Virus record (IMG/VR): IMGVR_UViG_3300017917_000952
Span: 124,001-188,000 of that record
DNA length: 64,000 bases
Strand: one strand, 5' to 3'
Every line of letters starts with the position of its first letter. The first letter of the stretch is position 1. Under the pieces are notes generated by a model that worked only from the letters and a program-made list of their open reading frames with translations, was not told where the DNA came from and ran no database searches. The position numbers and the translations under genes were made by a program. Positions 4,746 through 47,556 of this stretch are shown piece by piece.

Positions 4746-4754
4746 GGAACAGAT

Positions 4755-5462: not shown

Positions 5463-5683
5463 AAGAACGGTTGTCCGGTTTCTTTTGTAATCTCTAAATT
5501 ATTTTGGATAATTTTTCCTATAAGGACTCTATCTTCGTACGATAGAAGGTAGCCTTCGGCAATGCTAGTACCGCGCATGTGCCAACAAATTCTAAAAATT
5601 TCGTCTTTTAAGGCTTTTGACTCTTCTTCGTATTCTTTTACAACCTTGTCAATTTCTTCAAGGCTGAGAGACAAAAGCCTCAT
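5459..5683 (-). CDS. Small tail/baseplate assembly chaperone-like protein (74 aa), possible frameshift extension of upstream ORF
   Basis: ATGA overlap with 5680..6528; lies in the -1 frame immediately after a U UUU UUC heptamer. Confidence 0.6.
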   Translation of the reverse strand: MRLLSLSLEEIDKVVKEYEEESKALKDEIFRICWHMRGTSIAEGYLLSYEDRVLIGKIIQNNLEITKETGQPFF

Positions 5684-6528: not shown

Positions 6529-6544
6529 AACGGTTTTGTCTCCG

Positions 6545-6581
6545 AATAAATAATAGATAGAATTCTTTCTAAGTATTTATA
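6545..6581. promoter_or_regulatory. Overlapping divergent late promoters
   Basis: AATAAATA on + (6545-52) facing ATG 6606; TATAAATA on - (6574-81) facing ATG 6528. Confidence 0.75.
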
Positions 6582-6605
6582 TACGCACAAAACTCCGGAA
6601 AAACA

Positions 6606-8894: not shown

Positions 8895-8898
8895 GATT

Positions 8899-10632
8899 AT
8901 GTCTTGGAAAAAATATTTTACACCCGTTGACACAAGTGGTAAACTTAGCCCTATTAGCGGTGCTATGAATATGGGGTCGGGTGCAAATCCTAGCCGTTCA
9001 AACTATTCTAGTTACTTACCCGACATTTACGCTGGACATCCTAACCGTCTAGAGCGTTATGGTCAATATGATACTATGGATACAGACAGCGAAGTTAACG
9101 CTGCCTTTGATATTCTTGCAGAATTCTGCACACAGGCCAATGAAGAAAACGGAACCCCGTTCCAAATTTTCTTCAAAGATCAAGCAACACAAACTGAAAT
9201 CAAGATCATTAAGAAGTATCTACAACAATGGACACGAATGAACAAGTTTCAAATTCGTATGTTCAAAATTGTTCGGAATGCATTTAAGTATGGTGACAGT
9301 TTCTTTGTCCGAGATCCGGAAACACAGAAGTGGTTGTATATTGATCCAGCAAAAGTAGATAAAATTATTGTTAATGAAAGTGAAGGCAAAAAGCCTGAAC
9401 AGTATTTCATTAGAGATTTTAATCCTAACTTAGAAGCACTGGCAACAACTGCGATTCAGCCAACAAACGTACATGGCGGCGGAAGCCAGTTCGGCGGAGC
9501 ATATAACTCTGGTCTAGGCGGCGCAGGTGGTAGCAGGGGTATGACTGGTAGTTATCCTACTGGCGCATCTGGTACAAGATTCAGTGAAAATCAAAATCAA
9601 TATGCTATTGATGCACGACATGTCATTCATATTAGCATGAGCGAAGGTTTAGACAACAATTTCCCATTTGGAAATAGTCTAATGGAAAGTATCTTTAAAG
9701 TTTTTAAACAAAAAGAACTATTAGAAGATGCTATCTTAATCTATAGAATACAACGTGCTCCTGAGCGCAGAGTATTTTATATTGACGTCGGTAATATGCC
9801 AAGCCACTTGGCTATGAGTTTTGTTGAGCGTGTAAAAAACGAAGTTAATCAACGCAGAATTCCTAGCGTAACAGGTGGAGCCCAGAGCGTCGTAGATGCT
9901 GCATATAACCCATTAAGCATTAACGAAGATTATTTCTTCCCACAAACCGCAGAAGGTCGAGGTAGTAAGGTTGAAATTCTGCAAGGCGGACAAAATCTAG
10001 GAGAGATCGATGATCTTAGATATTTTACTAATAAGTTGTTTCGTGCTTTACGCATACCTAGCAGTTATCTACCTACCGGCTCTGACGACGGAGGATCTAA
10101 CTTCAATGATGGTAGAGTTGGAACAGCCTACATTCAAGAACTTAGATTCAACAAATACTGCGAACGACTACAAAGTCTCCTAAACGAACCGTTCGATACT
10201 GAATTTAAGATGTATCTACATACCCAAGGTATTAATGTAGATAACAATGTTTTTGAAATTAAATTCAATCCTCCGCAAAATTTTGCCGCATATCGACAGG
10301 CAGAAATGGATACTGCTCGTGTTAATACATTTAATACCATGGTTGCAGTCCCGTTTGTAAGCAAGAGATTTGCTATGAAGCGTTTCTTAGGTATGACTAC
10401 AGAAGAAGTTGCAGAAAACGAACGTCTATGGCGCGAAGAAAACATTGATGAAGATCAATATCTAAGCGCAAGTAGTGAACTTCGAGGTGCTGGAATCACA
10501 GCAAACGGTATAGCATCTGACACATCAACGCTAAGTGGTGCAGCAACACCACCGCCCGAAGCAGTAGAAACACCTGCAGAAGGCGGAGCAGCCGCTCCTG
10601 CGGCCGGCGCAACACCACCGCCAGCGGCATAA
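8899..10632 (+). CDS. gp20: Portal vertex protein
   Basis: LLEDAILIYRIQRAPERRVFYIDVGNMP...YFFPQTAEGRGSKVEILQGGQNLGEIDDLRYF, hallmark of T4-like portals. Confidence 0.95.
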   Translation: MSWKKYFTPVDTSGKLSPISGAMNMGSGANPSRSNYSSYLPDIYAGHPNRLERYGQYDTMDTDSEVNAAFDILAEFCTQANEENGTPFQIFFKDQATQTEIKIIKKYLQQWTRMNKFQIRMFKIVRNAFKYGDSFFVRDPETQKWLYIDPAKVDKIIVNESEGKKPEQYFIRDFNPNLEALATTAIQPTNVHGGGSQFGGAYNSGLGGAGGSRGMTGSYPTGASGTRFSENQNQYAIDARHVIHISMSEGLDNNFPFGNSLMESIFKVFKQKELLEDAILIYRIQRAPERRVFYIDVGNMPSHLAMSFVERVKNEVNQRRIPSVTGGAQSVVDAAYNPLSINEDYFFPQTAEGRGSKVEILQGGQNLGEIDDLRYFTNKLFRALRIPSSYLPTGSDDGGSNFNDGRVGTAYIQELRFNKYCERLQSLLNEPFDTEFKMYLHTQGINVDNNVFEIKFNPPQNFAAYRQAEMDTARVNTFNTMVAVPFVSKRFAMKRFLGMTTEEVAENERLWREENIDEDQYLSASSELRGAGITANGIASDTSTLSGAATPPPEAVETPAEGGAAAPAAGATPPPAA

Positions 10633-10640
10633 ATATTCAT

Positions 10641-10889
10641 ATGATACTAAGAGAATTCATATACTTTGATCGCGATCATGCTGATCCTCAAAAGGACAAT
10701 AGGTACATTAGTAAAAATGATACCAGTGTTCTTAAGAGTTCTGACCTACGTAAAACTCGTTTAACACTAAAAATGATTAACGAAATACGCAGAGCAGCCG
10801 AAGCACACGATAAAGAAAAGCGTGAAGAATTAGGCTTGGTACGAAAAATGTACGCTGCACCACCGCCTGAAGCGGCCGCAGCAGCATAA
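10641..10889 (+). CDS. Small head-module hypothetical protein (82 aa)
   Basis: Between portal and core genes, own TAAATA 5 nt upstream. Confidence 0.65.
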   Translation: MILREFIYFDRDHADPQKDNRYISKNDTSVLKSSDLRKTRLTLKMINEIRRAAEAHDKEKREELGLVRKMYAAPPPEAAAAA

Positions 10890-10976
10890 AAATTGTCAAA
10901 ACCAGAAGAAATTCTGCGTCTGCACGGTCAAAAAGGTTCATTTTTGGCCTATTTCAAGCCGATATATTAACTGTGC

Positions 10977-10984
10977 TGTAAATA
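10977..10984 (+). promoter_or_regulatory. Late promoter-like TGTAAATA
   Basis: TAAATA core 40 nt upstream of ATG 11025, with AGGAG SD in between. Confidence 0.65.
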
Positions 10985-11024
10985 CATCAAGCCTTGCCGC
11001 TACCCTATTAGGAGAATTAAAAAC

Positions 11025-12071
11025 ATGTCTACAAAATTTGAACAATTGCTAGACTTATTAATCAACGAAGAACACGATAAAGCTCAAGAGCTTTTCCATG
11101 AAATCGTTGTTGAAAAGTCTCGTGAAATTTATGAAAACCTTATCGCCGAAGAAGAAGATGAGGAAATGGATGAAGCAGCCGACGACGAAGAAATGGACGA
11201 GTCTGCTGATGACGAAGAATTAGATGAATCTGCAGATGACGAAGAAATGGACGAGTCTGCTGATGACGAAGAATTAGATGAAGCCGAAGACGAAGAAGCC
11301 GACGAAAGTATGGATCTAGAAGATTCTTACATGATGGACGGCGACGACGAAATGGGCGGAGATGCCACAGACGACCTAGGCGGTGACATTGGTGCCGACA
11401 TGGGCGACGAAGAAGGTGGCGAAGGTTCTGAAGATCAAGCAATTTTTGATATCAAGAACGCCATTGAAGAACTAGAAGCCGCGTTTGCTCAACTAGAAAA
11501 AGCACAAGGTGGTGAAATGGATGCTGACTTCGGTGACGAAGAAGGCGGTGACGATATGGGCGACGAAGAGCCTGCAAAGATGGGCTTCCAAGAAGGTCGT
11601 CGTATTACACGCGAGTACACTGAAAAAGTTGGTAACGACTGGGAAAAGAACAGCCAGAAGACTCCAGGCCCAGTAGGTTCTGGTAAAGGTGAACTAGCAG
11701 GTCAAACTAGTGTTTCCGACACAAAGAGCCCAATTAGCTCTGGTAAGGGCAAGCCATCTACTGGCGCAACTGCTCATAACATCCTTGGCGATGCTAAAAC
11801 AGGTCAAGGTAAGAACACAGGCGATCGTCCTGACAGCCTAAACAAAGGTATCGCTCAAGTAAGCGGCGAGAAGTTTGCTAAGGGCATTCATAACGTTGAC
11901 GGTGCTAAGTCTGGTGTTAAGACACTAAGCAAAGTTGCTGGTGGTCACGGTGCTGAGAAGAAAGGTTCTGGTCCGGGCCCAGTAGGTGCTGGAACAGGCG
12001 ACAAAGCAGGTCAGACCAACGTTCACAACACACCTAGCCCGCTAAACGGTGCACCTAACCGTAACGCTTAA
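11025..12071 (+). CDS. Acidic prohead core protein (positional analogue of T4 gp67/gp68)
   Basis: Very Asp/Glu-rich N-half, Gly/Lys-rich C-half, located between portal and protease. Confidence 0.65.
   Translation: MSTKFEQLLDLLINEEHDKAQELFHEIVVEKSREIYENLIAEEEDEEMDEAADDEEMDESADDEELDESADDEEMDESADDEELDEAEDEEADESMDLEDSYMMDGDDEMGGDATDDLGGDIGADMGDEEGGEGSEDQAIFDIKNAIEELEAAFAQLEKAQGGEMDADFGDEEGGDDMGDEEPAKMGFQEGRRITREYTEKVGNDWEKNSQKTPGPVGSGKGELAGQTSVSDTKSPISSGKGKPSTGATAHNILGDAKTGQGKNTGDRPDSLNKGIAQVSGEKFAKGIHNVDGAKSGVKTLSKVAGGHGAEKKGSGPGPVGAGTGDKAGQTNVHNTPSPLNGAPNRNA
11181..11285 (+). repeat. 27-nt tandem repeat x4 with 54-nt higher-order period (DDEEMDESA/DDEELDESA)
   Basis: Units at 11181, 11208, 11235, 11262; units 1/3 and 2/4 near identical. 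Confidence 0.9.
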
Positions 12072-12084
12072 TTAGAGAACCTGG

Positions 12085-12717
12085 ATGAAACAGATTTCTT
12101 ACTTACGCGAACATTTAAGTTTTGATCAGGCTCAAGCGGTGCTTGAGTCTGACGACAAGGATGGTAAGAACCTTTATCTAAAGGGTATTGCTATTCAGGG
12201 TGGTATTCGCAACGCTAATCAGCGTGTCTATCCTGTAGACGAAATTGAACGTGCTGTGAAAACACTTAATGATCAAATTCAAAACGGATATAGCGTATTA
12301 GGAGAAGTCGACCATCCTGATGATTTAAAAGTTAATTTGGATCGTGTATCCCATATGATTACTCAGATGTGGATGGAGGGTCCAAATGGCTATGGAAAGA
12401 TGAAAATCCTTCCTACGCCAATGGGAAACTTAGTCCGCACCATGCTTGAAAGCGGTGTAAAACTTGGTGTTAGTTCTCGTGGTAGTGGCAATGTCAACGA
12501 CATGAACGGCCATGTATCCGATTTCGAGATTATCACGGTGGACATAGTAGCTCAACCCAGCGCACCTGGTGCCTATCCTACTCCTGTGTATGAACATTTA
12601 ATGAACACACGCGGGGGTATGAAGGCATACAGGGTCGCTACCGAAGTAAAAGAAGATCCAAAGGCCCAGAAATATCTTCAAGAAGCACTCTTGAATGTTA
12701 TTAAAGGTCTGAAATAA
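12085..12717 (+). CDS. gp21: Prohead protease
   Basis: NANQRVYP, LGEVDHP (His), GVSSRGSG (Ser), DIVAQPSAPGA motifs. Confidence 0.95.
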   Translation: MKQISYLREHLSFDQAQAVLESDDKDGKNLYLKGIAIQGGIRNANQRVYPVDEIERAVKTLNDQIQNGYSVLGEVDHPDDLKVNLDRVSHMITQMWMEGPNGYGKMKILPTPMGNLVRTMLESGVKLGVSSRGSGNVNDMNGHVSDFEIITVDIVAQPSAPGAYPTPVYEHLMNTRGGMKAYRVATEVKEDPKAQKYLQEALLNVIKGLK

Positions 12718-12735
12718 GCCCGAGGAGAAAAATAA

Positions 12736-13824
12736 ATGGACGCATTCAAACAGTTAGTTGAGTCCGGCGTGATGACAGAGGAGACACGTACAGTTGTCGA
12801 GGCTGCTCTTGCTGCTAAGATTCAAGAAACTCGCGAACTTGTGACCGCTGAACTTCGTGAAGAATTTGCACAAAAATATCAACATGATAAAAGCATGATG
12901 GTTGAAGCAATCGACAAGATGTTAAGCGACCGCTTGACCGCAGAGATGTCCGAATTGTATGCTGACAAAAAATCTCTAGCAGAAGCAAAAGCACGTTATA
13001 CACAACGTATTAGTGAAGATGCTAAGAAGTTAGAGGGATTTGTTATCAATCAACTAGGCAGAGAGTTAGTTGAGTTCCAGGGCGATCGTAAGAAAGTCGC
13101 TGAGAACTTCCAAAAGTTAGAGCAATTTGTAGTACACGCTCTAGCAAAAGAAATCCAAGAATTTGCTACTGATAAGAAAGATCTAGCCGAAACCAAAGTT
13201 AAGTTAGTTCGTGAAGCAAAGAGCAAGTTTGAAGATATCAAGCAAAACTTCATTAAACACGCCGCTAAGGTTGTTGAAAGTACAGTCACTAACAAGTTGA
13301 CATCTGAAATCAAGCAATTGAAAGAAGACATCGACGGTGCCCGTAACAACGATTTTGGTCGCAGAATTTATGAAGCATTTGCACAAGAGTTTGCCGGTTC
13401 CTATCTAAATGAAAAATCCGAAACAAGTAAATTGTTAAAGATTATTCAGAAGAAAGACCAAGAACTTGCAGAAGCACAACAGGTCGTAGCAGAAAAGGCG
13501 AATCTAGTAGAATCTGTACAACGTGAAATTCGTATTACAAAAGATCTAATGGAACGCAAACAAGTTATGGCTGAGTTGCTAGCACCTTTAAGTGCTGACA
13601 AGAGAGAGGTTATGAAAGAACTTCTAGAGTCTACCCCGACTCAGAAACTTACAGAATCTTTTGACAAATACCTACCAGCAGTTATGGAAGGCCAGAAGAA
13701 GGCTCCTGCCAAAAAAGCAGCAGTCCTCACTGAAGGTGCAGAAGTAACAGGAAATAGAGAAATTAAGCCAGAGGTAGGCTTAGATAACATCTTAGATATC
13801 CGCAAGTTAGCGGGTCTAAAATAA
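12736..13824 (+). CDS. gp22: Prohead core scaffolding protein
   Basis: Coiled-coil Glu/Lys-rich protein between protease and capsid genes. Confidence 0.85.
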   Translation: MDAFKQLVESGVMTEETRTVVEAALAAKIQETRELVTAELREEFAQKYQHDKSMMVEAIDKMLSDRLTAEMSELYADKKSLAEAKARYTQRISEDAKKLEGFVINQLGRELVEFQGDRKKVAENFQKLEQFVVHALAKEIQEFATDKKDLAETKVKLVREAKSKFEDIKQNFIKHAAKVVESTVTNKLTSEIKQLKEDIDGARNNDFGRRIYEAFAQEFAGSYLNEKSETSKLLKIIQKKDQELAEAQQVVAEKANLVESVQREIRITKDLMERKQVMAELLAPLSADKREVMKELLESTPTQKLTESFDKYLPAVMEGQKKAPAKKAAVLTEGAEVTGNREIKPEVGLDNILDIRKLAGLK

Positions 13825-13847
13825 AAATATTCAAGGAGACAACGGAA

Positions 13848-15035
13848 ATGTCACAATTATTAAATGAAAGATGGTCCGAAACCAAGGACGCTCTGCTTGA
13901 AGGCCTACAAGGTACCCGTCGTTCTTCTATGGCAGTTTGCTTAGAGAACACACGTAAGTACTTGGCTGAAAGCGCAACTTCTGGCGCAACAAGTGCTGGA
14001 AATATCGCAACTCTAAACCGCGTTATTCTTCCAGTAATTCGTCGCGTTATGCCAACTGTTATTGCTAACGAAATCATCGGCGTTCAGCCTATGACCGGTC
14101 CAGTTGGTCAGATCCATACCCTACGTGTTCGTTATGCTGACTCTTCTAACGAAGTTACAGCAGGCGAAGAGGCACTAAGCCCATTCAAGATCGCTCAAGC
14201 GTATTCTGGTAACGACAATGCATCCACACCACGTGCGGCTGCTACTTCTACTCTAGAAGGTACACCAGGCAAGCGTATGAGCATTCAAATCTTGAAGGCA
14301 CCAGTCGAAGCCAAGAGCCGCAAACTAAGCGCTCGTTGGACATTCGAAGCCGCTCAAGACGCACAAGCACAACAAGGTATCGATATCGAAGCAGAAATCA
14401 TGGCTGCTCTAGCACAAGAAATTACTGCTGAAATCGACCAAGAAATCCTAGCAAGCCTACGTGGTCTAGCAAGTGTTGAAGAAACATATGACCAGGCTCT
14501 AGTATCCGGTACTGCTACATTCGTTGGTGACGAACATGCTGCTCTAGCAATTCAGATCAACCGTGTTGCAAACTTGATCGCTCAGCGTACACGTCGTGGT
14601 GCTGCTAACTGGGCAGTTGTATCTAACCAGGCTCTAACAATCCTTCAGTCTGCTACAACTAGCGCATTTGCACGTACTACAGAAGGTACATTCGAAGCAC
14701 CTACAAACACCAAGTTTGTTGGTACACTAAACGGTTCTATGCGTATCTATGTTGACGCATATCTACCAGACAGCGGTAGCCAGTCTATCGAAGACAACCA
14801 AGTTCTAGTTGGTTATAAGGGTTCTAGCGAAGCAGACGCTGCTGCGTTCTACTGCCCTTACATTCCTCTAATGAGCTCTGGTGTTGTTCTAGACCCAGCA
14901 ACATTCGAGCCAGTAGTTGGCTTCCTAACACGTTACGGCTATGTTGAGTTAACAAACACAGCATCCAGCCTTGGTAACGCTGCTGACTACCTAGGTAAGG
15001 TAAGCATCAACTCTACAAACACAAGTTTCAAGTAA
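13848..15035 (+). CDS. gp23: Major capsid protein
   Basis: LPVIRRVMPTVIANEIIGVQPMTGPVGQI, SRKLSARWTFEAAQD, FYCPYIPL, TRYG motifs; strong AAGGAG SD. Confidence 0.97.
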   Translation: MSQLLNERWSETKDALLEGLQGTRRSSMAVCLENTRKYLAESATSGATSAGNIATLNRVILPVIRRVMPTVIANEIIGVQPMTGPVGQIHTLRVRYADSSNEVTAGEEALSPFKIAQAYSGNDNASTPRAAATSTLEGTPGKRMSIQILKAPVEAKSRKLSARWTFEAAQDAQAQQGIDIEAEIMAALAQEITAEIDQEILASLRGLASVEETYDQALVSGTATFVGDEHAALAIQINRVANLIAQRTRRGAANWAVVSNQALTILQSATTSAFARTTEGTFEAPTNTKFVGTLNGSMRIYVDAYLPDSGSQSIEDNQVLVGYKGSSEADAAAFYCPYIPLMSSGVVLDPATFEPVVGFLTRYGYVELTNTASSLGNAADYLGKVSINSTNTSFK

Positions 15036-15065
15036 TCAACTGCTTGAATTTGAAAGAGTACAAAG

Positions 15066-15090
15066 AACCCGCGCAAGCGGGTTTTTTGTT
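15066..15090 (+). terminator. Intrinsic terminator after major capsid gene
   Basis: AACCCGC-GCAA-GCGGGTT followed by T-run; immediately followed by GTTAAATA late promoter (15088-95). Confidence 0.9.
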
Positions 15091-15108
15091 AAATACTATT
15101 CTAAGTAT

Positions 15109-15152
15109 TATGCAGTTCCATCTGCGTAGACCTAGAACGTCATATTAAGGAG
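15109..15152 (+). promoter_or_regulatory. Structured 5' leader (two hairpins with possible loop-loop pairing) abutting SD
   Basis: TATGCAG/CTGCGTA (15109-15/15122-28), GAC/GTC (15129-31/15139-41), loop TTC complementary to loop GAA; AAGGAG at 15147-52. Confidence 0.4.
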
Positions 15153-15159
15153 AAACAAA

Positions 15160-15834
15160 ATGGGACGTCCAATTAAAAAGAAATTTTTCGGTAATACAAA
15201 CATTGCCATCGACGGCGAAGGTGTAGGCGGTGAAGCAGTTGCTACTATTGCTAAAAACAATACTGGTACACTATATACAACTAGCACAACTCTAAGCCTA
15301 ACATTTACTGCACCTCAGATCGCCGGCGGTCAAACTGCATTAGGCGAAGTAACAACTAACGAATTAGGTAACGTAGCAACAGTAACATTGTTAGACGGTG
15401 GTAGTGGTTATACCAGCACACCTACTGCAACTGTAACTAGTGGCACAACAGGTACTGTAGCGACATTTACAATCAGCATGTCTACTAACCGTCAAAACGC
15501 TATTAAGTTTGATAGTTTTGTTCCCGGCGGTAGCTCTGCTGTTGGCGCAGGTGACATTATCAGACAGTCTGGTTCTAGAGCATACCTAGTTAAAAACAGC
15601 CAAGGTACTGGTATTTGCCGTTTAGTAACTTCTAGCACACTAGCAGAAGGTCAAATGAACTTAGTTGCTACAGATACAAACGGTAGCACATACTATGTTC
15701 GTAAGTTAACTGCTCGCAAGGCTGTTCTTGTACAAAGCACAGCAAGCGGAAGTTTCGTATTTGCTAACGAATCTGTTGCAGGATGGACTTTAGGTTCTCC
15801 TTCTGCAGGTTATGTAAGTATTACAAACAACTAA
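15160..15834 (+). CDS. Thr/Gly/Ser-rich virion structural protein (possible head decoration)
   Basis: Directly after capsid gene, late promoter and strong SD, beta-rich composition, GGSGYTSTPT motif. Confidence 0.6.
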   Translation: MGRPIKKKFFGNTNIAIDGEGVGGEAVATIAKNNTGTLYTTSTTLSLTFTAPQIAGGQTALGEVTTNELGNVATVTLLDGGSGYTSTPTATVTSGTTGTVATFTISMSTNRQNAIKFDSFVPGGSSAVGAGDIIRQSGSRAYLVKNSQGTGICRLVTSSTLAEGQMNLVATDTNGSTYYVRKLTARKAVLVQSTASGSFVFANESVAGWTLGSPSAGYVSITNN

Positions 15835-15852
15835 TTAGATCTAATCTAATTC

Positions 15853-15880
15853 AAAGGACTCTTCGGAGTCCTTTTTTATT
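15853..15880 (+). terminator. Intrinsic terminator with cUUCGg loop
   Basis: AAAGGACTC-TTCG-GAGTCCTTT + T-run; GGTAAATA promoter follows at 15883-90. Confidence 0.9.
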
Positions 15881-15894
15881 CTGGTAAATACAGG

Positions 15895-16401
15895 ATGAGC
15901 ACACAATGGCATTCTCCTACTCTAATAACACAGTACGCTGAAGATCCTTCACACATTGAATGGAACACCGACTTCGATACCGTGATAACCTTAAATGGCG
16001 GTCTTGCACTTTCTAAACCTTTGTTTCATATAGCTCGACAACCAAAGAATGATATTAAATCAAAGTCTTGGTTTTTAAGTGCAACAAATTTTAATTTTCA
16101 AAATCTCCCATCTATTGTAAACGGAATTTCTCTCAAAATAACTGCAACTAGACAAGGTCGTGTTACAGACGACACTGTTCAATTAGTGCATAACGGAGAA
16201 CTAATAGGAGAAAATAAGTGTTCAAGATCAGTTAACCCTGTAAATGTCTACGGCAGCGAATCAGATGCCTGGGGTGTTGAAAATTTAACAAGCATAATAC
16301 ATGATCCTTCATTTGGTATAGTAGTTAGATTTAAAAGTCATCCAGACTGGCCTCATTCTACCACTCCAATTTTAAGAGGCTTGGAACTTCAGATCTACTA
16401 A
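15895..16401 (+). CDS. Hypothetical virion-associated protein (168 aa)
   Basis: Late promoter 4 nt upstream; beta-sandwich-like composition. Confidence 0.6.
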   Translation: MSTQWHSPTLITQYAEDPSHIEWNTDFDTVITLNGGLALSKPLFHIARQPKNDIKSKSWFLSATNFNFQNLPSIVNGISLKITATRQGRVTDDTVQLVHNGELIGENKCSRSVNPVNVYGSESDAWGVENLTSIIHDPSFGIVVRFKSHPDWPHSTTPILRGLELQIY

Positions 16402-16432
16402 ACGAATAAATACCCTAAAGGAATCTAAAATA

Positions 16433-19400
16433 ATGGCGGGAAATAGACAATCAGGAACAAGGTCACTAGCCCCAAAGAGCGGGTCAGTTCAATCTCCTAA
16501 TTCATCTTTTATTTCACAAAATGATAACGGTGTAACGCTGGTATTATCATCGTCTACTAACATAGGCGGATTTTTAAGAGTTGTAAATGCAGGGACCGGT
16601 CTTTCCTTTGCTGTTATTAAGAATAACGCACAAAACGTTGGAAGTGTAAACAATCCTACAGGAAATGATCCACTTGCTCCTATAGATCAATCGTTGTTTA
16701 GTACTACGGCTCAGAGACAAACGGCAGGTGCATACTTTGCCGGTGGTGTCGGTATCGAAAAGGACTTAGCCGTAGGCGGATTTATCTACGGTCGTATTGC
16801 TGCTGCCAACACAGCAACCACGGCATCTAACATTGCTGTCTTAGAAACTAACGAAGATAAGAGATACTTCCCATTATTCACTGACGAAGATGGTATGATT
16901 GTGCAAGGCGCACAGATCTACGGTGATATTTTAAATCAAGACGGCAGCGAAGGTGGCCTGACCTATAACCCATACCTTGGTAAAATTACTACTGAGCGAG
17001 TTAAGATTAAATCTACAGATGATGCATCTAGTGTAGAAAGTGCTGCATTGTCTGTAGATGGTGGCGCCGGTGTTAAACTCAACTTAATGGTTGGACAAAA
17101 TATCATACCAGAAAGTGACGGTAGCGCAATTGGTACTGAAGAAGTTAGTTGGAGAGATGCATATCTAACTAATATCTATACAAAATTTTTAGGTAATACG
17201 AACAGCAACATCACACTAAGTCCAGCGGGCGGAGAAGGCATTGTTGAATTGTTCGGAGACATTCGCGTAAGAGGTAATAACCCAGTAGGTACTGCACCAG
17301 TTGTTACAAATACACTGTATGTAACCATGGACGGTAACGACACTAACGACGGCCGTGCAATGGATCCGAGCCGTGCTTGCCGTACAATTGGCGGTGCAAT
17401 GAACAGTCCGTACTATCAACCAGGCACACAGATTCTAGTAAGTCCTGGTCGTTATTTAGAAGACAACCCCTTAGTCATGAAGCCTTATACTTCGGTAAGA
17501 GGCAGCGATATTCGTACAACGTTTGTTGAACCAATTAACAAAACTCAAGACTTGTTCCATATGAATAGCGGTTGCTATTTAAACTATATGAACTTCTTGA
17601 ATGGCCGTAGCGGCAAGTTACCTGGCCAATACAACGAACGATTCAACAGAGGTGCGTTTGCAACAGCGTTCCCTCCTCAGACAGGTGATAACAGAATTGA
17701 CCTGTTCCAGAGTCCATATATTCAAAACTGTACTAACCAAAGCGGGCCATGGTTAATTGACGGTACAATGTTTGTACCTAACCAAACCGTTCAAGTACCT
17801 CAAGCAGTAGCAGTAGGATCTTGGGAAGCAAATACTACAACATTACTAGTTAATGTACAGCAAGGCGATATTGTAATTGGCCAGAGTATCAATCCAGGTA
17901 AACAAAATCCAGGATTCTTCAACGCAAGAACATTACTGCTAGCAAACAAGCCCTTCATTCAAAGTCAAACCGTTGCTTGGGTAAACACAAACTTCCCTGG
18001 CTTTGTTTATAATGAACAACTATGCTTTAGAGATGCCGGCATTTTAGTTGAAAACATGTCTTATGACATGGCCTTCGGCGGAAATGAGAAGAGTGTTGAA
18101 AGCGGGCTTTCATATTACAGAGGTGTAACTAGTGTTATTGCAGGACAAGAAACACAGACTGTAGGGGCAATCGAATACATTAAGTATCTATGCAGCCTAA
18201 TTGTCGAAAACAACACTTGCCCTGTCCTTACACCTCCGGCAAATATTCCTGTAAATTCTCAGGTCATTAACCTTAACTGCACAGGCGGTGCTATTGCATT
18301 AGATTCAATTGACAATTTATTTGACATCGTTATTGATATTATTAACAATGGTCCCGATGCTGCTCCTGATCTGTATATTGGTCCTGGACCTGACGCAGCC
18401 TTTGTCAGTGCAGAAATTTTAATGCAGGCAAACAGAAAGTTTATTCAAGAAATTACTCTTGATCATATTAACACTAACCTGTGTGTGCCTCCAAAGAGTT
18501 TACCTTATAACCAAATTAGATGCAAGAGAGATGCATTAATTATTCTTGACAGTGTTAGTTCAGACCTGTTATTTCCAACAACAGGAAACAGTCAGAGTAC
18601 CTTTGCAGGTATTCAGTATTTCTCCCAAGGCGGATACACCGGAAGTATACCGGCTGAAATTACTGCAACTATCGCAGCAATTACATACCTAAGAGATTTA
18701 AGTTTAGAAATTGTACAGAACATTACAGCAGAGATGGATGCAGTGTTAGGTATCTATCGATATACTGTTGGCGCACAAACTACTGCTAGTAACTATGCAA
18801 CAGCCTCCGAAGTGGCTACTCTAAAATCTGGATTTAATAACATCCTAACAATCTTAGGTGGTAAATCTACCGGATGGACTGACTTGATTGTACCAAACGG
18901 CGGTGAACCTAGTCCGTTTACTAGTGTAAAAAATGCCTACGATTTATTATTAGCAAATACCAGTTACATCCAAGGAGAAATTATTGGATTTGTAACTGCA
19001 AACTATCCAACACTGGTCTACGATCAGGCAAAATGCGAACGAGATGTAGAGTATATTCTACAGAGCCTTGCGTTTGATTTACTCTACGGAGGAAATCGTC
19101 AAAGCATTCAGGCAGGTCTAAGTTATTATTCTAATCTAACAGGCGTAACTGTTATACCAAATGAAACAACAGCAACAATAGATGCATTTACATTTATGAA
19201 AGATGTTGCAGTTGATCTTATTCAAGGTAACGCATACACACCAATTCAGACTAGAGTAAAACCAGTAACAGGATTACCGTTAAGTGATGCATCTGCTGCA
19301 ACAGAGATTACTAAGATCTTTAGCACAATCACAGATATTATCTTATCTGGTCCTAGTATTGCTGCTCCTCTTGAACCAATTAATTTAACTAGGTCCACTA

Positions 19401-21847
19401 GTACAACGGTAATCAATGCATTTGATATTATTAAAGCAAACAAGAATTTTATTGTTGCTGAAATGATTGCATATCTTGATAATACATATAATCCTGGAAG
19501 TTTTAACTACGACCAAGAATTGTGCTATCGAGATGTTGGCCTGATTATCGACGCAGTTAGCCAGGACATTCTATTAGGCGGAAATCAAAAGTCTCTCGAA
19601 GCAGGTCTAAGTTATTGGAGCGCCGGATACAATTACGTTTCTGGCCAAGTCTCTACAACAACGGCTGCAATTAACTATGTTCGCGATGTTGCGTTACAGG
19701 TAATTGCTAACACTACAGTAACTGGAATAACAAATACAGTTACAAAACAAGTAATTAATACCTTCTTCCAGTATGGCGGCGACTACATGCCGCAGGAAGC
19801 AGTGTCTAGAAACTTTAATATCATTACAGATATTATTGAGAACGGACCTGCGGTAGCACCTCCTATATATGCAGGCGGTGGTCTGTTTAGCCTAACAGGT
19901 CTGAATGGCAGTTCTGTAAAGATCGCACCAAAGGTAACTAGCGTTAACGAAGTCAGTACTGGTACATATTTGATCGGTTTGAACACAGCAACAATCGGAT
20001 TTGGAAAAAATGCAACATTGTATTTCGGAGAAACTGCGGTTTATCCGTTACAAGATGCACAAGTTTCTGCAAAGAGCTTAGAATACACAGGCAATGCAAC
20101 TACCTGGGATGAAAGAAAAGTAGATCCTAACGGTTCTATGGGCGGTAGTCTTGTTGACGGTGGAGTAATTAGTGATCGAAGCCCGATCCAGTCGTTTGTT
20201 TACGATGCGTTTACTCAACTTAACCAGGGCGGTGTTGGTATCAAAGTTACTAACAACGGCTACGCACAGTTAGTTTCTGTGTTTACAATTTTCTGTTCCG
20301 TGGGTGTTCAATGCGATAACGGAGGTATTGCTTCTATTACTAACTCTAACTGTAACTTCGGTGACATATCGTTGCTAGCAAAAGGCTACGGTAAGAGAGA
20401 GTTTAGCGGTACAGTATTCAATCCAAAGTTTAGAGCATATCCTTTCAGTCCTAACGGCCCGGGATTGCCTTACCTTGATCAATTCTATCCAGAGGGTTAC
20501 TGGCCTAACAATGGCGGTCGTGTTGAAGTGTTTGTCCCAGACACAGCAAACAGACCTCACATTGGCCTAGTAATGGAAGTTGAGCCCCCACTAGGCTATC
20601 TAAACGAACAAAGTTTACCAGGGTTCTTAAATGCTACACCTAGCACCAGCACACTAACAACTGGCACAATCAACCTAACAGGCATCAGTACAACTGATGT
20701 GTTTATTGGTAACGAATTAATTGTTAGAGATCAATTTGGTAGACAGTATGACGACAACGGCGTCTACTATGTTGCTACCGGTACTGTAGTTACAGATGTT
20801 AACTATAATTCAATTAGCCTCAGCAATGCACTAACTAGTGGCGGCGGGGATCCGACTAACCCGACATACTTTACACTATATTTCTGCGGAAATAGTTATT
20901 ACACAGTCCTTACTAGCGCAGTAGCAAACCAACCTTATGCTCCTAATACAAACATATTAGCAGCAAACAGTGATCCGTACTATCAAGGCCCACCAACAAG
21001 CCAGATTGCGGCTCACGTAACCGCACTTCAACATATGAGAAGTGTTGTTGATGCAGTTATTGATAATATACCTGTTACGCCTACCGCAGGAAATACTGCT
21101 ACGCAGGTTATTACTCCGTCTATCGTTGGCGGCGTACAAGCTCAGGCCTTTGTTGACTTACACATCGAATACATTATTGATATAGTCAATGCACCTAATT
21201 ACGCAGCAGCAACCGCAGTGGTTCCGCAAAGTCAAATACTAGAATCTGGTACTATACCCAATGGCGCGGGTAGTTGTATAATCTTGATTGAATCAAATAT
21301 AGAATTTATCGCACAAGAAGTTGCGGCCTATGTTGATTTTTGGTTATCGGGCGGCATAGGCAGTTACGATAAAACAAAATGTATTAGAGACATTAAACTA
21401 ATCTTACGACAACTAATTTATGATCTACAAAGTGGCGGAAACTATAATAGCATTTACTCTGGTCTAAGTTACTGGAGTCGTCCAGGCACACATCACATTG
21501 TTGAACTAGGCGAAGCGGTTGCAAGACCTGAATACTTCCCAGACGGTGCTATTATTAATTTCTATCAAAGAAGTTATATCAGTGCCAGCGGATACCTATT
21601 TGAATATGTAGGAGCAGGTACTAACTATGGCGCATTACCTCAACGTGGCGTAGCAGATCCTGTACAGAGTAAAGAAACAGTTCAGTTAAACGCAGGTAAG
21701 GTATTCTTTACCAGCACCGACCAGAACGGTGACTTTAGAATTGGTCCAGGATTAGTAATTAGTCAGGCAACGGGTGTTCTAAGCGGTAGAACATTCGTTC
21801 AAAGTTTATACGCAAATATGACTCCATTCATATTAGCAATTGAATAA
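16433..21847 (+). CDS. Large virion structural protein (1804 aa): beta-helix-like regions plus five helical repeats resembling phycobiliprotein subunits
   Basis: YVTMDGNDTNDG...CRTIGGA beta-helix-type start; repeats with Y-x4-C-x-R-D...GGN...GLSY at Cys531, 697, 868, 1031, 1650; late promoter at 16405-12. Confidence 0.75.
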   Translation: MAGNRQSGTRSLAPKSGSVQSPNSSFISQNDNGVTLVLSSSTNIGGFLRVVNAGTGLSFAVIKNNAQNVGSVNNPTGNDPLAPIDQSLFSTTAQRQTAGAYFAGGVGIEKDLAVGGFIYGRIAAANTATTASNIAVLETNEDKRYFPLFTDEDGMIVQGAQIYGDILNQDGSEGGLTYNPYLGKITTERVKIKSTDDASSVESAALSVDGGAGVKLNLMVGQNIIPESDGSAIGTEEVSWRDAYLTNIYTKFLGNTNSNITLSPAGGEGIVELFGDIRVRGNNPVGTAPVVTNTLYVTMDGNDTNDGRAMDPSRACRTIGGAMNSPYYQPGTQILVSPGRYLEDNPLVMKPYTSVRGSDIRTTFVEPINKTQDLFHMNSGCYLNYMNFLNGRSGKLPGQYNERFNRGAFATAFPPQTGDNRIDLFQSPYIQNCTNQSGPWLIDGTMFVPNQTVQVPQAVAVGSWEANTTTLLVNVQQGDIVIGQSINPGKQNPGFFNARTLLLANKPFIQSQTVAWVNTNFPGFVYNEQLCFRDAGILVENMSYDMAFGGNEKSVESGLSYYRGVTSVIAGQETQTVGAIEYIKYLCSLIVENNTCPVLTPPANIPVNSQVINLNCTGGAIALDSIDNLFDIVIDIINNGPDAAPDLYIGPGPDAAFVSAEILMQANRKFIQEITLDHINTNLCVPPKSLPYNQIRCKRDALIILDSVSSDLLFPTTGNSQSTFAGIQYFSQGGYTGSIPAEITATIAAITYLRDLSLEIVQNITAEMDAVLGIYRYTVGAQTTASNYATASEVATLKSGFNNILTILGGKSTGWTDLIVPNGGEPSPFTSVKNAYDLLLANTSYIQGEIIGFVTANYPTLVYDQAKCERDVEYILQSLAFDLLYGGNRQSIQAGLSYYSNLTGVTVIPNETTATIDAFTFMKDVAVDLIQGNAYTPIQTRVKPVTGLPLSDASAATEITKIFSTITDIILSGPSIAAPLEPINLTRSTSTTVINAFDIIKANKNFIVAEMIAYLDNTYNPGSFNYDQELCYRDVGLIIDAVSQDILLGGNQKSLEAGLSYWSAGYNYVSGQVSTTTAAINYVRDVALQVIANTTVTGITNTVTKQVINTFFQYGGDYMPQEAVSRNFNIITDIIENGPAVAPPIYAGGGLFSLTGLNGSSVKIAPKVTSVNEVSTGTYLIGLNTATIGFGKNATLYFGETAVYPLQDAQVSAKSLEYTGNATTWDERKVDPNGSMGGSLVDGGVISDRSPIQSFVYDAFTQLNQGGVGIKVTNNGYAQLVSVFTIFCSVGVQCDNGGIASITNSNCNFGDISLLAKGYGKREFSGTVFNPKFRAYPFSPNGPGLPYLDQFYPEGYWPNNGGRVEVFVPDTANRPHIGLVMEVEPPLGYLNEQSLPGFLNATPSTSTLTTGTINLTGISTTDVFIGNELIVRDQFGRQYDDNGVYYVATGTVVTDVNYNSISLSNALTSGGGDPTNPTYFTLYFCGNSYYTVLTSAVANQPYAPNTNILAANSDPYYQGPPTSQIAAHVTALQHMRSVVDAVIDNIPVTPTAGNTATQVITPSIVGGVQAQAFVDLHIEYIIDIVNAPNYAAATAVVPQSQILESGTIPNGAGSCIILIESNIEFIAQEVAAYVDFWLSGGIGSYDKTKCIRDIKLILRQLIYDLQSGGNYNSIYSGLSYWSRPGTHHIVELGEAVARPEYFPDGAIINFYQRSYISASGYLFEYVGAGTNYGALPQRGVADPVQSKETVQLNAGKVFFTSTDQNGDFRIGPGLVISQATGVLSGRTFVQSLYANMTPFILAIE

Positions 21848-27835: not shown

Positions 27836-30800
27836 ATGACATCTGTATTACAATTTAGAAGAGGAAACACAGCACAGAACGATGCGTTCACAGGTGCTGT
27901 AGCAGAAATTAGTATCGATACAAGTACTAATACCTTACGTGTTCATAACGCAGTTACACCGGGCGGTACATTTATTATGCCAACACTGCGTTTAACCAAC
28001 GCAGAAAGATTAACAACAACTGCACAAGTAGGTCAATTTATATACGTCACTGATAACGTATCGGCGGGAGTTGCGCCAACATGGGTAGGCGATGGAGTAA
28101 CAGCAGGTGGCGTAGTTGCAGCGGGCGGTGTTGTATCAGCCGCATCTACAGCAAGTAATTTATCAGCAGGTACCGCTGGTCAGATTCCTTATCAAACAGG
28201 ACCCGGTGCAACCAGTTTCTTTGGTCCGGGATCTGCTGGACAGTTTTTACTAAGCAACGGAACAAGTGCGCCTGCATTTACAAATACCTTAACATATTCT
28301 AACGGTAGCATTAGAGTCGACGGTACTGCTAATGCTACTTCAACTAGTACCGGTGCGTTAATTGTTGCAGGCGGCATCGGTGTTGCGGGCGATGTGTATG
28401 TCGGCGGTAAAATTGTTTCTCAACAATTAGAAATTCAACTTACTACTGTAACTACAACATTAATTCAAACCGACGATGTCATTAAAACATCCAACACAAC
28501 CGCGGCACATAACGCTACTACTGGTGCCCTACAAATTGCCGGTGGCATAGGTGTCGGCGGAAGTATTTTTGTTGCAGGTAATGTAACCGCTACTACATTC
28601 TTTGGAAACTTAACTGGTACAGCCAGCACCGCAACTGCTGCGGCAACTGCTTACTCGACAATTGGCACACATACTGCTGGTACAGGTCTAAGTGGTACTA
28701 CTTTCAACGGCAGTGCAAACGTTACCTGGACATTGAACACTGCTACACTAATGCAGACAGCCGTTAACCTAAACGGCGGCGCAGCAGGTAGTTTACCATA
28801 TCAAAGCGCAGCAGGCGCAACAACATTCCTAGGAATCGGTACTAGCGGATTTGTATTAACCAGTAACGGCAGTGCTCCTACATGGACAGCATTGAGCGGA
28901 CTTAGTGCAGGTCTTGCCACAACGGCAAGCAACATTGCAGGTGGATTAGCAGATCAAATTCCTTATCAAAGTGCTCCTGGACAAACAACATTTAACGCAG
29001 CACTTCGTTTCAACGGAACAACATTTACCACAACAAATATTGTCGTAAGCGGTACAACAAATTCATTATCTAATACCAGCACACAGGGCGCACTATTAGT
29101 CACTGGCGGTGCTGCAATCGCTAAAGACTTATTTGTAGGTGGTGATATTAACCTACAGGGTAACCTGTACCTAAAGGGCGCCGGCCTTGACCAGATTACA
29201 GGTAGTACAGGTACATTTGATTACGTAAGCATTGAAGGTACCGGTACTGGATTAACCGTTGCTGACGGAGTATCTATTGGCGGCGACACATTAATTACAA
29301 AGACTACCGCAGCAAGTTCTACTAACACGGGTGCGTTACAAGTCCGGGGCGGCGTTGGTATTGCTGGCGGCCTTGTTGTTGCTACTGTTGTAACTGCAAC
29401 TAACTTCTCTGGTTCTTTAAGCGGTGGTACAGGCGGGGCGATTGTATATCAAAGTGCTGCAAATACTACAGCATTCTTAAGTACATCCACGACTGGTAAC
29501 TTCCTACAAGGTAACTTTAACGGTGCTCCTACTTGGACTAGCACAGGTAGCATGTATGTAGGTAGTTCCGTATTTGCAGAAGATATTCGTGGCGGGACAA
29601 ACGGACAAATTGTTTATCAAATCTCAGCAGGTAATACTGGTTTTGTCGGTCCTGGCACAACAGGTAACCTCTTCATTAGTGGCGGTGGAGGAACTCCAAG
29701 TTTCTTAGCAACAGGTGCCGCAGGTACTTTCTTAGGCAGTGCAGGTTCTGGTTCTGCTCCGGTATGGACTACAACTGCAACGATGTATGTACAAAACTCT
29801 AACGTAAGTACAAATCTACGTGGTGGAGTTGCAGGACAATTACACTATCAAACAGCCGCAGATACAAGTGGTTACATCACAACCGCTACAACAGGTAACT
29901 TCTTACAGGCCAACTTCAACGGTGCACCTACATGGACTAGCACAAGTAGTATGTATGTTAACCGTGCAACATTGGCAGACAGTGCTACAACAGCAACAAG
30001 TGCGGGTACTGCTTATGCAACTATCGGTACACTAACTGCCGGTACAGGTCTAACAGGTACTGCGTTCAATGGTAGTGCAAACCAAACTTGGACATTGAAC
30101 ACTGCTACCTATATGGCCAGTGCCGTAACTGCTAACAACTTAGCAGCAGGCGCAGCAGGTAGTCTGCCTTACCAGACATCTGCTGGCGCAACTACTTTCC
30201 TCGGTATCGGTACTAGCGGATATGTATTAACCAGTAACGGTACTGCTCCTACATGGAGTGCATTAAGCGGATTAAGTGCCGGTAACGCAACTACAGCAAC
30301 AAACTTAGCCAACGGTCTTGCAGGGCAGATTCCTTATCAATCTGGAGCAGGTTCGACAACATTCTTAGGAACTGCAACAACAGGTAACTTCTTACAAGCC
30401 AACTTTAATGGCGCACCGCTATGGACATCTAGCGGTACCATGTATGTTAACAGTGCGGTATTTGCAGAAGATCTGTATGGAGGAAGCTCTGGACAGTTAG
30501 TCTATCAAAGCAATCTTAACACAACTGCTTTTGTAACTACAGCAACCGCAGGCAACTTCTTACAGGCAAATGGTACTAATGCACCAACTTGGACAACAAC
30601 AGCATCTATGCATGTCGGTGCTGCGGTTACTGCAAGTAAGATTGTTGGTGGCACAGACGGACAGTTAGTCTATCAAATTTCTACAGGCGTAACAGGATTT
30701 GCTGGACCGGGCACTGCTGGACAATTATTAGTCAGCGGCGGTACTAGCGCACCAACATACACAAATACTAGCAGCATCTATATTCAAGACGCTAACGTAA

Positions 30801-47199: not shown

Positions 47200-47556
47200 A
47201 TGTACAATAACATTCCATCACCTTCGAAGTCTCCAGCGGCTGTTGCCTATTCGAATTCTTATGAAAGGCCTACTGAGCTTGAAACAAATACCTTTAACAT
47301 AATGAAGGGATTTTTTGAAGCAAGGGGCTTTGACAAACTATCAGCCGAAAGCATTGCTGTAACATTCATTAAACAGGCACAAATGGATAGTTACAATCCT
47401 TTAGAAATTATAGATACATTAAAAACATTTGATGCTCCTAAACTAAATTCTGTTGTAACAGAAGTATTAAATTACAACAGATTCAAAAGCAGTTATTTAG
47501 GAAGCACAAAAGGTCTTCAACCCTTCGAACCAGTATCAAGAAATATAGTGGTATGA
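47200..47556 (+). CDS. Hypothetical protein (118 aa)
   Basis: Co-oriented ORF with ATGA-type coupling to next gene. Confidence 0.6.
   Translation: MYNNIPSPSKSPAAVAYSNSYERPTELETNTFNIMKGFFEARGFDKLSAESIAVTFIKQAQMDSYNPLEIIDTLKTFDAPKLNSVVTEVLNYNRFKSSYLGSTKGLQPFEPVSRNIVV

Follow-up and report, generated by a model that had tools for sequence, protein, structure and literature searches.

Predicted phycobiliprotein-like repeat domains in a tail-fiber or baseplate-type protein of an aquatic, probably cyanobacterial, phage

We examined a 64,000-nucleotide stretch of IMG/VR record IMGVR_UViG_3300017917_000952 (positions 124,001 to 188,000), referred to here as the window. An open reading frame at 16433-21847 (+) encodes a protein of 1804 amino acids that lies between the major head protein (13848-15035) and the tail sheath (42476-45451), with portal, protease and gp15-like genes also nearby. 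The protein matches PHROG tail-fiber, short-tail-fiber, virion-structural and baseplate-wedge families with E-values of 1e-13 to 2e-78, and a protein carrying the same repeat domain occupies the gp7 position in the cyanophage P-HM2. Homologs are annotated as 'virion structural protein' in cyanophage records. The assignment to the tail fiber or baseplate is inferred from gene position and family matches. The capsid protein of the phage is 121Q/Rak2-like (70% identity) rather than of the Kyanoviridae type.

The protein begins with a region at 16433..17911 (+) (aa 1-493), for which searches of Pfam and of PDB sequences (the latter with aa 1-485) returned no match. This is followed by four tandem repeats of approximately 165 amino acids. 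R1 (17912..18391 (+), aa 494-653) carries Cys531 with its codon at 18023 and matches positions 2-151 of a profile HMM built for the repeat family (iE 1.5e-51). R2 (18398..18913 (+), aa 656-827) carries Cys697 (codon 18521) and matches positions 2-157 (iE 3e-43). R3 (18923..19396 (+), aa 831-988) carries Cys868 (codon 19034) and matches positions 2-159 (iE 1e-54), and R4 (19406..19891 (+), aa 992-1153) carries Cys1031 (codon 19523) and matches positions 2-155. In pairwise BLASTP comparisons the four repeats are 31-37% identical, with E-values of 1e-17 to 4e-32. The middle region at 19892..20974 (+) (aa 1154-1514) contains a block (aa ~1208-1325) that is conserved in cyanophage tail-fiber families and gives the best stretches of similarity to phrog_5342, 529, 9851 and 29288, although a PDB sequence search with aa 1161-1520 found nothing.

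A fifth copy of the domain is located near the C-terminus and is circularly permuted. The C-terminal half of the family HMM (positions 80-156) matches first, at 20975..21241 (+) (aa 1515-1603, iE 5e-10), and corresponds to the G and H helices. The N-terminal half (positions 7-76) follows at 21269..21523 (+) (aa 1613-1697, iE 1e-18), and corresponds to helices A, B, E and F' with Cys1650 (codon 21380). This arrangement is shared by all seven orthologs examined at the domain level, and K-C-x-R-D is invariant at this site in 43 orthologs. NCBIfam gave only a weak match, of aa 1646-1669 to the Cys-82 region of CpeA. An AlphaFold2 model of aa 1480-1804 shows confident helices in the first part of the copy, but a Foldseek search with this model gave no significant match, and phycobiliproteins appeared only at probability <0.25. 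This is expected for a permuted order combined with a disordered tail, and the assignment of the fifth copy rests on the HMM half-matches and confident helices only. The remainder of the protein, at 21530..21844 (+) (aa ~1700-1804), is a C-terminal fiber domain that is highly conserved among the 43 orthologs and is predicted with low confidence in the AlphaFold2 monomer. A tblastn search found this domain in 150 phage records, all but two of which are cyanophages or unannotated marine single-cell viral records, and the cyanophages include podovirus tail fibers.

A preliminary description of the sequence had reported five phycobiliprotein-like domains, each with a bilin-attachment cysteine, at 17920-21480. 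We confirmed this observation, since C-x-R-D occurs at exactly the five codons that had been listed and the five peptides given around them are all present. However, the fifth copy is permuted rather than an ordinary repeat, and the span given cuts off the end of this copy and misses the rest of the gene. The accompanying interpretation, that this is a tetrapyrrole-binding structural protein that might produce a pigmented or light-sensing virion, is partly supported. Its structural component is borne out by the analyses described below, whereas its functional component remains an inference.

The resemblance to phycobiliproteins reflects real homology. The whole protein matches Pfam family PF00502 with an E-value of 2.8e-11 and a score of 44.1 bits, compared with a cut-off of 22.2. 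Single repeats are borderline, with R4 scoring 22.8 and 21.8 bits and R3 scoring 18.6 bits, while R1 and R2 give no hit, and only 8 of 110 diverse copies hit the family on their own at E<0.01. A profile of the four repeats retrieved phycobiliproteins in 24 of 26 PDB matches, with the cysteine aligned to Cys-82/84. An hhalign comparison of the 110 diverse repeats with phycocyanin alpha subunits gave a probability of 92.6% (E 4.6e-7, 108 columns) and aligned K-C-x-R-D-x-G-Y, the G-G pair and the G helix, which places the phage cysteine at the Cys-84 bilin-attachment site on helix E. The AlphaFold2 model of R4 (pLDDT 89.5, pTM 0.86) has a predicted globin-type fold, and its top 50 PDB fold matches in Foldseek are all phycobiliproteins (TM 0.52-0.64, about 155 aligned columns). 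It could be argued that the similarity is convergent or due to chance and that the repeats are an unrelated helical bundle, given that E-values for single repeats against PDB sequences and Pfam are marginal (0.004 to 0.2; 18.6-22.8 bits) and those from Foldseek are about 4e-3. We consider this very unlikely because independent methods agree, the hit lists contain almost only phycobiliproteins, and identical spacing of K-C-x-R-D-x-G-Y, the G-G pair and the G helix cannot plausibly arise by chance.

The repeat defines a large family of 1377 clusters with up to 39 copies per protein. In 596 copies from 76 IMG/VR loci, the cysteine is retained in 583, the arginine in 587 and the aspartate in 594. 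In 150 representative family proteins the cysteine is kept in 999 of 1017 full motif instances, and 1452 C-x-R-D motifs are observed where amino acid composition predicts about 5. The motif is also kept in the distant copies of S-PM2, P-HM2 and DSL-LC03. In addition, 79% of all cysteines inside the domains are the motif cysteine, and elsewhere in the domains cysteine occurs at only 0.17 per 100 amino acids, so there is no partner for an intradomain disulfide. The preliminary description had named a cysteine that is paired between repeats or poorly conserved among homologs as evidence against its proposal. Conservation was confirmed, and a partner within the domain was not found. An alternative is that the cysteine serves a different chemistry, such as inter-chain disulfides or other cross-links that lock the fiber after lysis, or binding of heme or a metal through the Cys, Asp and Tyr residues. 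Cys41, Asp44 and Asp55 of the repeat fall on one side of the long helix by helical periodicity, which suggests, by inference, one free cysteine per domain on a conserved acidic face, and globin folds bind heme. However, the proximal-His arrangement of heme globins was not seen among the conserved columns, and the fold matches are to phycobiliproteins only, not heme globins. Moreover, three equivalent cysteines in a trimer could not all pair, and conservation of Arg and Asp fits bilin binding better. We therefore regard this alternative as unlikely.

Among 50,697 phage records the domain occurs only in cyanophages (134 of 134 and 349 of 349 records), where it is found in tail-fiber proteins, gp7 and other virion structural proteins. 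The hosts of these phages make bilins, and only cyanomyoviruses carry ho1, pcyA, pebS and cpeT (PMC10452541). The cpeT gene lies immediately upstream of the homologous giant fiber gene in S-CAM4 and 1.4 kb upstream in S-PM2, and hit coordinates place it 2-5.5 kb away in several other genera. In contrast, Pfam scans of 30 of the approximately 50 ORFs in the window, outside of which lie about two thirds of the 206,751-bp contig, revealed no heme oxygenase, FDBR or S/T/E-F lyase family and none of the V4R or Fe-S proteins of BBAG neighborhoods, and no CpeT homolog was found in the window or in the flanks of 76 related loci. A search of genome contigs with a degenerate pattern recovered 11 true arrays, all in MAGs or a single-cell genome and none in an isolate genome, and these sit mostly in bins of heterotrophs. 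A search for stand-alone relatives of about 170 amino acids returned only fragments on short contigs and no cellular phycobiliproteins.

We propose that the gene encodes a virion tail-fiber or baseplate protein of a T4-superfamily aquatic phage, probably a cyanophage, whose central part is an array of four phycobiliprotein-type globin domains with a fifth, permuted copy near the C-terminus. The homology, the fold (as a predicted structure) and the conservation of the chromophore triad are established by our analysis, and the domains descend from the same stock as phycobiliprotein subunits. They retain the helix whose Cys, in phycobiliproteins, forms the thioether to the bilin and whose Arg and Asp hold the propionates and pyrrole nitrogens. 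What follows is inferred from sequence alone. Each domain probably picks up a linear tetrapyrrole (PCB, PEB or biliverdin) in the infected cell, and attachment would be autocatalytic, as in BBAG globins, or helped by a lyase such as the phage CpeT-like protein. The assembled fiber would then be a chromoprotein. The most likely use of such a pigment would be to make fiber or baseplate behavior respond to light, although a stabilizing or protective role is also possible. We consider bilin binding to be plausible, but no better than an even possibility. The aromatic residues of helix G that contact the alpha-84 bilin in phycocyanin (W128 and Y129) align with Thr or Gln in the phage consensus, the F-helix region is predicted to be a beta hairpin, and about a third of family copies are a short form lacking the last helix. 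Moreover, to our knowledge, colored cyanophage preparations have not been reported.

A competing possibility, which we hold to be somewhat less likely, is that the domain is an exapted phycobiliprotein fold that carries no chromophore and serves only as a rigid, length-setting spacer of the fiber. Copy number differs between orthologs (3, 5, 7 or 9) and reaches 39 in the family, as expected for spacer modules, and short and permuted forms exist. We also looked for an alternating, alpha/beta-like super-repeat of two domains. Copy numbers do change in steps of two, but similarity between positions shows no clean period-2 pattern, and this idea was rejected. The domains occur in proteins that also hold collagen-like, lectin-like and chitin-binding modules. 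The family has its own invariant residues (Asp at Cys+14, Tyr71 and Asn13) that phycobiliproteins lack, and these could form a self-contained polar network in place of a ligand, such that C-x-R-D and the family-specific Asp and Tyr would be kept for this internal network or for an interdomain contact. The lack of conserved helix G aromatics, and of detectable bilin genes among the window ORFs scanned, is also compatible with this view. However, an unpaired cysteine kept in about 98% of more than 1400 copies, in a domain otherwise nearly free of cysteine, is hard to explain by packing alone, and the three retained residues are exactly those that serve the chromophore in phycobiliproteins and BBAGs. 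No chromophore-less phycobiliprotein lineage is known to us.

The domains might instead mimic phycobiliproteins to engage host phycobilisome machinery (linkers, lyases, NblA or proteases), for example after ejection into the cell. The restriction to cyanophages among cultured phages and the similarity to the phycocyanin alpha type are in keeping with this, and phages are known to manipulate phycobilisomes through NblA (PMC12695635). However, the X-Y hairpin and the surfaces used for alpha-beta and disc assembly are missing, sequence identity to real phycobiliproteins is only about 15-24%, and the proteins are giant fiber or baseplate components with receptor-type C-terminal domains, not obvious ejected proteins. 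This explanation therefore appears quite improbable.

We found no publication describing these domains. If they do carry bilin, this would bear on why cyanophages encode bilin synthesis genes and a CpeT-like protein even when they infect Prochlorococcus, which lacks phycobilisomes, a question that Sullivan et al. 2010 call 'a mystery' and 'unresolved' (PMC3037559). The same question applies to the HO-PcyA cassettes of phages thought to infect non-cyanobacteria (PMC11480375). A phage-encoded apoprotein with the C-X-R-D site is the missing candidate acceptor. In addition, adsorption of S-PM2, P-HM1 and P-HM2 is light-dependent yet independent of host photosynthesis (PMC6628666). All three carry these domains in fiber or gp7 proteins, and P-HM1 and P-HM2 also encode ho1, pebS and cpeT. 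The absence of the domain from P-SSP7 is confounded by morphotype and is no more than compatible with a link to light-dependent adsorption. A more speculative and, at present, doubtful reading is that tail fibers and baseplates of cyanomyoviruses and related aquatic jumbo phages are bilin chromoproteins that act as the phage's own photoreceptor. In this view ho1, pebS, pcyA and cpeT would exist, at least in part, to make and attach the pigment to these virion domains, and light absorbed by the fiber would gate adsorption, which would explain why the three phages do not adsorb in the dark. The domains would also represent a third and very large C-X-R-D lineage beside phycobiliproteins and BBAGs, with implications for how bilin-binding globins diversified. 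Even if they prove colorless, a photosynthetic antenna protein recruited as a repeat module of virus fibers is an unusual case of host-gene exaptation.

Phycobiliprotein subunits (PF00502; phycocyanin, phycoerythrin and allophycocyanin alpha and beta chains) share with the phage domains the globin-type helices A, B, E, F', G and H, a length of about 160 amino acids, a similar G helix, and the K-C-x-R-D-x-G-Y chromophore helix with the same spacing to the G-G pair. The alpha type is closest by profile comparison and beta chains are closest by fold search, although identity is 12-24%. The N-terminal X-Y hairpin used for alpha-beta pairing is absent; alignments begin at phycobiliprotein residue ~29-39 or Pfam profile position 25-32 and the repeat starts directly with the helix equivalent to A. 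The phage domains are fused head to tail (4+1 copies here, up to 39 elsewhere) inside predicted virion proteins rather than being free subunits of about 160-185 amino acids encoded in paired alpha/beta genes of cpc, cpe or apc operons. In addition, the F helix is replaced by a predicted hairpin, there is a long G-H loop, and the family has the invariant Asp, Tyr and Asn noted above.

The bilin-biosynthesis-associated globins BBAG-1 and BBAG-3 (Rockwell, Martin and Lagarias 2023, PMC10151467) are phycobiliprotein paralogs outside the light-harvesting antenna that also keep C-X-R-D, the hallmark of phycobiliproteins and of these globins. They show that this motif can support lyase-independent covalent bilin attachment, with weak fluorescence. 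BBAGs are single-domain cellular proteins clustered with HO, pre-PcyA, V4R and Fe-S genes, whereas the domains described here are tandem modules of a phage structural protein, and no such neighbors were found among the window ORFs scanned.

Giant tail-fiber, 'gp7' and virion structural proteins of T4-like cyanophages, such as P-HM2 gp7 (4454 aa), S-PM2d218 of S-PM2 (3779 aa) and the 'short tail fiber' of S-CAM4 (4057 aa), carry the same repeat family with C-x-R-D kept and the same kind of C-terminal fiber domain. S-PM2d218 acquired selected mutations during coevolution with its host (PMC9910659). However, these proteins hold only 2-4 detectable copies among other modules, and are annotated as hypothetical or tail fiber with no mention of phycobiliprotein similarity. 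Finally, repeat-module fibers of other phages, with Ig-like, collagen-like and beta-helix spacers, likewise have variable copy number and modules shuffled within fiber proteins, but those modules have no cofactor-binding ancestry and no invariant unpaired cysteine.

The repeats lie within a single long ORF of 1804 aa on the + strand (16433-21847). A regular-expression scan of its translation identified C-x-R-D at Cys531, 697, 868, 1031 and 1650, whose codons start at nt 18023, 18521, 19034, 19523 and 21380. These are exactly the positions named in the preliminary description, and the peptides that it quoted are all present, so that its observation holds. When the protein is cut at the repeat boundaries and the pieces are compared with each other, the first four (R1-R4) prove to be genuine, old tandem repeats with 31-37% identity (E 1e-17 to 4e-32). 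A family HMM places them at aa 494-653, 656-827, 831-988 and 992-1153.

The fifth motif, which had been described as a further domain of the same type, is not in an ordinary copy. Positions 80-156 of the HMM match aa 1515-1603, whereas positions 7-76, which include the Cys, match aa 1613-1697 (window 20975-21523 overall). The helices that normally end the domain (G and H) therefore come before A, B, E and F'. This circular permutation is present in all seven orthologues examined at domain level, among them those of the related loci L002, L004, L017, L024, L046 and L048. In an AlphaFold2 model built with 43 orthologues the region is predicted as confident helices, with pLDDT of about 87-98 over aa ~1500-1700, although a fold search with that model gave no clear answer.

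Four independent lines of evidence support a phycobiliprotein fold. First, Pfam finds one family in the whole protein, PF00502 'Phycobilisome protein', at E 2.8e-11 and 44.1 bits against a cut-off of 22.2; single repeats are borderline. Second, a profile of the four repeats searched against all PDB sequences returns 26 weak hits, of which 24 are phycobiliproteins, and the repeat Cys always aligns with Cys-82/84. Third, we collected 596 copies from 76 related IMG/VR loci, aligned 110 diverse ones, and compared this alignment by hhalign with phycocyanin genes retrieved from metagenome contigs. The comparison with the alpha subunits gives a probability of 92.6% and E 4.6e-7 over 108 columns, and superposes K-C-x-R-D-x-G-Y, the G-G pair 18-19 residues after the Cys, and the following G helix. 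The beta alignment, however, had too little diversity to be informative. Fourth, AlphaFold2 with the 110-copy alignment gives a confident model of R4 (pLDDT 89.5, pTM 0.86) with six helices. Its 50 best Foldseek matches in the PDB are all phycobiliproteins, mostly phycoerythrin and phycocyanin beta chains (TM 0.52-0.64, about 155 aligned columns, 12-19% identity, probability 1.00, E from 4e-3). What is missing is the N-terminal X-Y hairpin, which real subunits use to form alpha-beta pairs; all alignments start at about residue 29-39 of the phycobiliprotein.

A full scan of 1.84 billion representative proteins with the four-repeat profile identified 1377 clusters at E<=1e-3 and 571 at E<=1e-30. 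These are giant proteins of up to 6382 aa with up to 39 matched stretches. About a third of the copies in the 150 most diverse representatives are a short form that ends near HMM position 100-110, without the G-H loop and the last helix. A fold search against viral models finds the domain in cyanophage 'tail', 'tail fibre-like' and 'structural' proteins, and in uncultured Caudovirales proteins that carry collagen-like, chitin-binding or lectin-like modules. Among 50,697 deposited phage genomes, tblastn hits 134 records with the window repeats and 349 with a P-HM2 copy, and every one is a cyanophage apart from one unannotated marine viral record in each list. The carriers include gp7 of P-HM2 and P-HM1 (in P-HM2 a 4454-aa protein between gp6 and gp8), the 3779-aa S-PM2 protein next to gp12, a 4057-aa 'short tail fiber' of S-CAM4, and a 3161-aa protein of the freshwater phage DSL-LC03.

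In contrast, a degenerate-pattern scan of 185,579 species genomes found only 11 true arrays (genome-contig loci L077-L091), none of them in an isolate genome. They sit in MAG bins labelled as heterotrophs (Rhodobacteraceae, Crocinitomicaceae, Sphingobacteriaceae, Chitinophagales, Polynucleobacter, Neomarinimicrobiota) and in one Prochlorococcus single-cell assembly. These are either mis-binned phage contigs or a hint that some carriers infect non-cyanobacteria. The domain is therefore essentially phage-borne.

The residues that hold the chromophore in phycobiliproteins are strongly conserved. In the 596 copies, Cys is kept in 583, Arg in 587 and Asp in 594. The family also has its own invariant Asp at Cys+14 (596) and a Tyr (595). 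In the 150 most diverse representatives there are 1452 C-x-R-D motifs where composition predicts about 5, and the Cys is present in 999 of 1017 full motif instances. Of all Cys residues inside 1352 domain copies, 79% are this one, and other Cys occur at only 0.17 per 100 residues, so there is no partner for an intradomain disulfide. The residue before the Cys is Lys in 791 of the 1452 motifs, as in alpha subunits. In addition, the motif survives in the distant copies of S-PM2, P-HM2 and DSL-LC03. C-X-R-D has been named as the motif of phycobiliproteins and of BBAG-1/3 globins, which bind bilins covalently without lyases (Rockwell et al. 2023, PMC10151467).

The IMG/VR contig, 3300017917_000952, is 206,751 bp long, and the gene sits in a T4-type late module consisting of portal, prohead protease, major head protein, this gene, a 2520-aa fibre protein, a gp15-like protein and the sheath. 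The 2520-aa ORF (27836-35398) matches tail-fibre families (phrog_4563, phrog_33119) over its last ~120 residues and contains no phycobiliprotein-like repeat. The major head protein (13848-15035) is about 70% identical to those of 121Q/Rak2-like jumbo phages of enterobacteria, Vibrio phage 2.275.O and Sinorhizobium phage Phosso, and is less similar to those of Kyanoviridae. The fibre modules, by contrast, are of cyanophage type, so that the phage combines a jumbo-phage-type capsid protein with cyanophage-type fibres. The last 115 residues of the repeat protein (21530-21844) form a domain found almost only in cyanophage fibres, being shared with tail fibres of cyanomyoviruses and cyanopodoviruses (S-SBP1, KBS-P-1A) and with one Pelagibacter phage. 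This domain could be a receptor-binding or trimerisation module, although the AlphaFold2 monomer is low-confidence here. A cyanobacterial host is therefore likely but not shown. A SegE-like GIY-YIG homing endonuclease (2271-2702) and a TnsA-like endonuclease (47553-47996) lie among the replication and structural genes and are probably mobile insertions. A cluster of sugar-nucleotide genes (61942-63846; NAD-dependent epimerase/dehydratase, cytidylyltransferase-like, PfkB-type kinase) suggests that the phage modifies a sugar or the cell surface.

Orthologues in 43 loci (for example L048, L011, L004 and L002) keep the same ends but carry 3, 5, 7 or 9 motif copies, so the tandem array changes in steps of two at its N-terminal side. 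R1-R4 of the window correspond to the last four of the longer arrays. However, similarity between positions shows no clean two-domain periodicity. Copy number that varies in this way resembles that of a spacer, and a colourless spacer remains a possible, though less favored, reading of the repeats.

Pfam scans of 30 ORFs of the window, beyond which two thirds of the contig lie, found no haem oxygenase, ferredoxin-dependent bilin reductase, or CpcS/CpcT/CpcE-F-type lyase. Likewise, S-PM2 CpeT has no homologue in the window or in the flanks of related loci. In cultured cyanomyoviruses, however, there is a suggestive neighborhood, in which the CpeT-like gene, usually treated as a host-metabolism gene, sits inside the baseplate and tail-fibre gene cluster (S-CAM4 NC_031900, locus positions 5515-18502; S-PM2, 4025-17340; P-HM2, 8001-8405). 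In S-CAM4 cpeT is the nearest upstream protein gene of the giant repeat-bearing fibre gene, separated from it by 290 bp holding two tRNAs, and in S-PM2 it lies 1.4 kb upstream. Hit coordinates place it 2-5.5 kb from the repeats in several other cyanomyovirus genera, namely in S-CAM1, ACG-2014h/i/j, S-RIM32, S-H9-1, S-H9-2 and S-RSM4, and in P-HM2 it sits between gp5 and the fibre genes. Because these genomes share synteny, this amounts to few independent events.

Our analysis establishes homology to phycobiliproteins, a predicted phycobiliprotein fold, and very strong purifying selection on exactly the three residues that hold the bilin, in a virion fibre or baseplate protein family tied to cyanophages; that the domains still bind a bilin is an inference. 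The preliminary interpretation, a phage structural protein that may bind tetrapyrroles, is thus supported only in part. Binding is favored by the conserved triad, the unpaired Cys, the precedent of lyase-free attachment in BBAGs, the fact that the hosts and some of the phages make bilins, and the position of cpeT inside the fibre gene cluster. Against it, the aromatic contacts of helix G are not conserved, the F region is remodelled in the predicted structure, short and permuted forms exist, the family has its own invariant polar residues, copy number varies like that of a spacer, and no bilin genes were found among the window ORFs scanned. On balance we consider bilin binding about as likely as not, a colourless spacer somewhat less likely, and other chemistry or mimicry, taken together, unlikely.

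If bilin is bound, the domains would bear on questions that have been raised about cyanophages. The role of phage pcyA and pebS has been called 'a mystery' and that of cpeT 'unresolved' by Sullivan et al. 2010, whose Table 3 shows ho1, pebS and cpeT together in P-HM1 and P-HM2 (PMC3037559). Liu et al. 2019 show that P-HM1 and P-HM2 do not adsorb in the dark, that P-SSM2 adsorbs less well, and that the podovirus P-SSP7 adsorbs normally. We found the domain in P-HM1, P-HM2 and S-PM2 but not in P-SSP7. This comparison is confounded by morphotype, however, and is only compatible with a photoreceptor role. In addition, S-PM2d218, the 3779-aa repeat protein of S-PM2, acquired selected mutations in a coevolution experiment (PMC9910659).

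Full-text literature searches found no paper describing phycobiliprotein-like domains in phage structural proteins. One database fragment of the family already carries a precomputed PF00502 label, so automatic annotation has touched it. Bilin-binding globins are themselves already known, and we regard the phage domains, in which bilin binding is inferred, as a lineage of these globins in a wholly new context.
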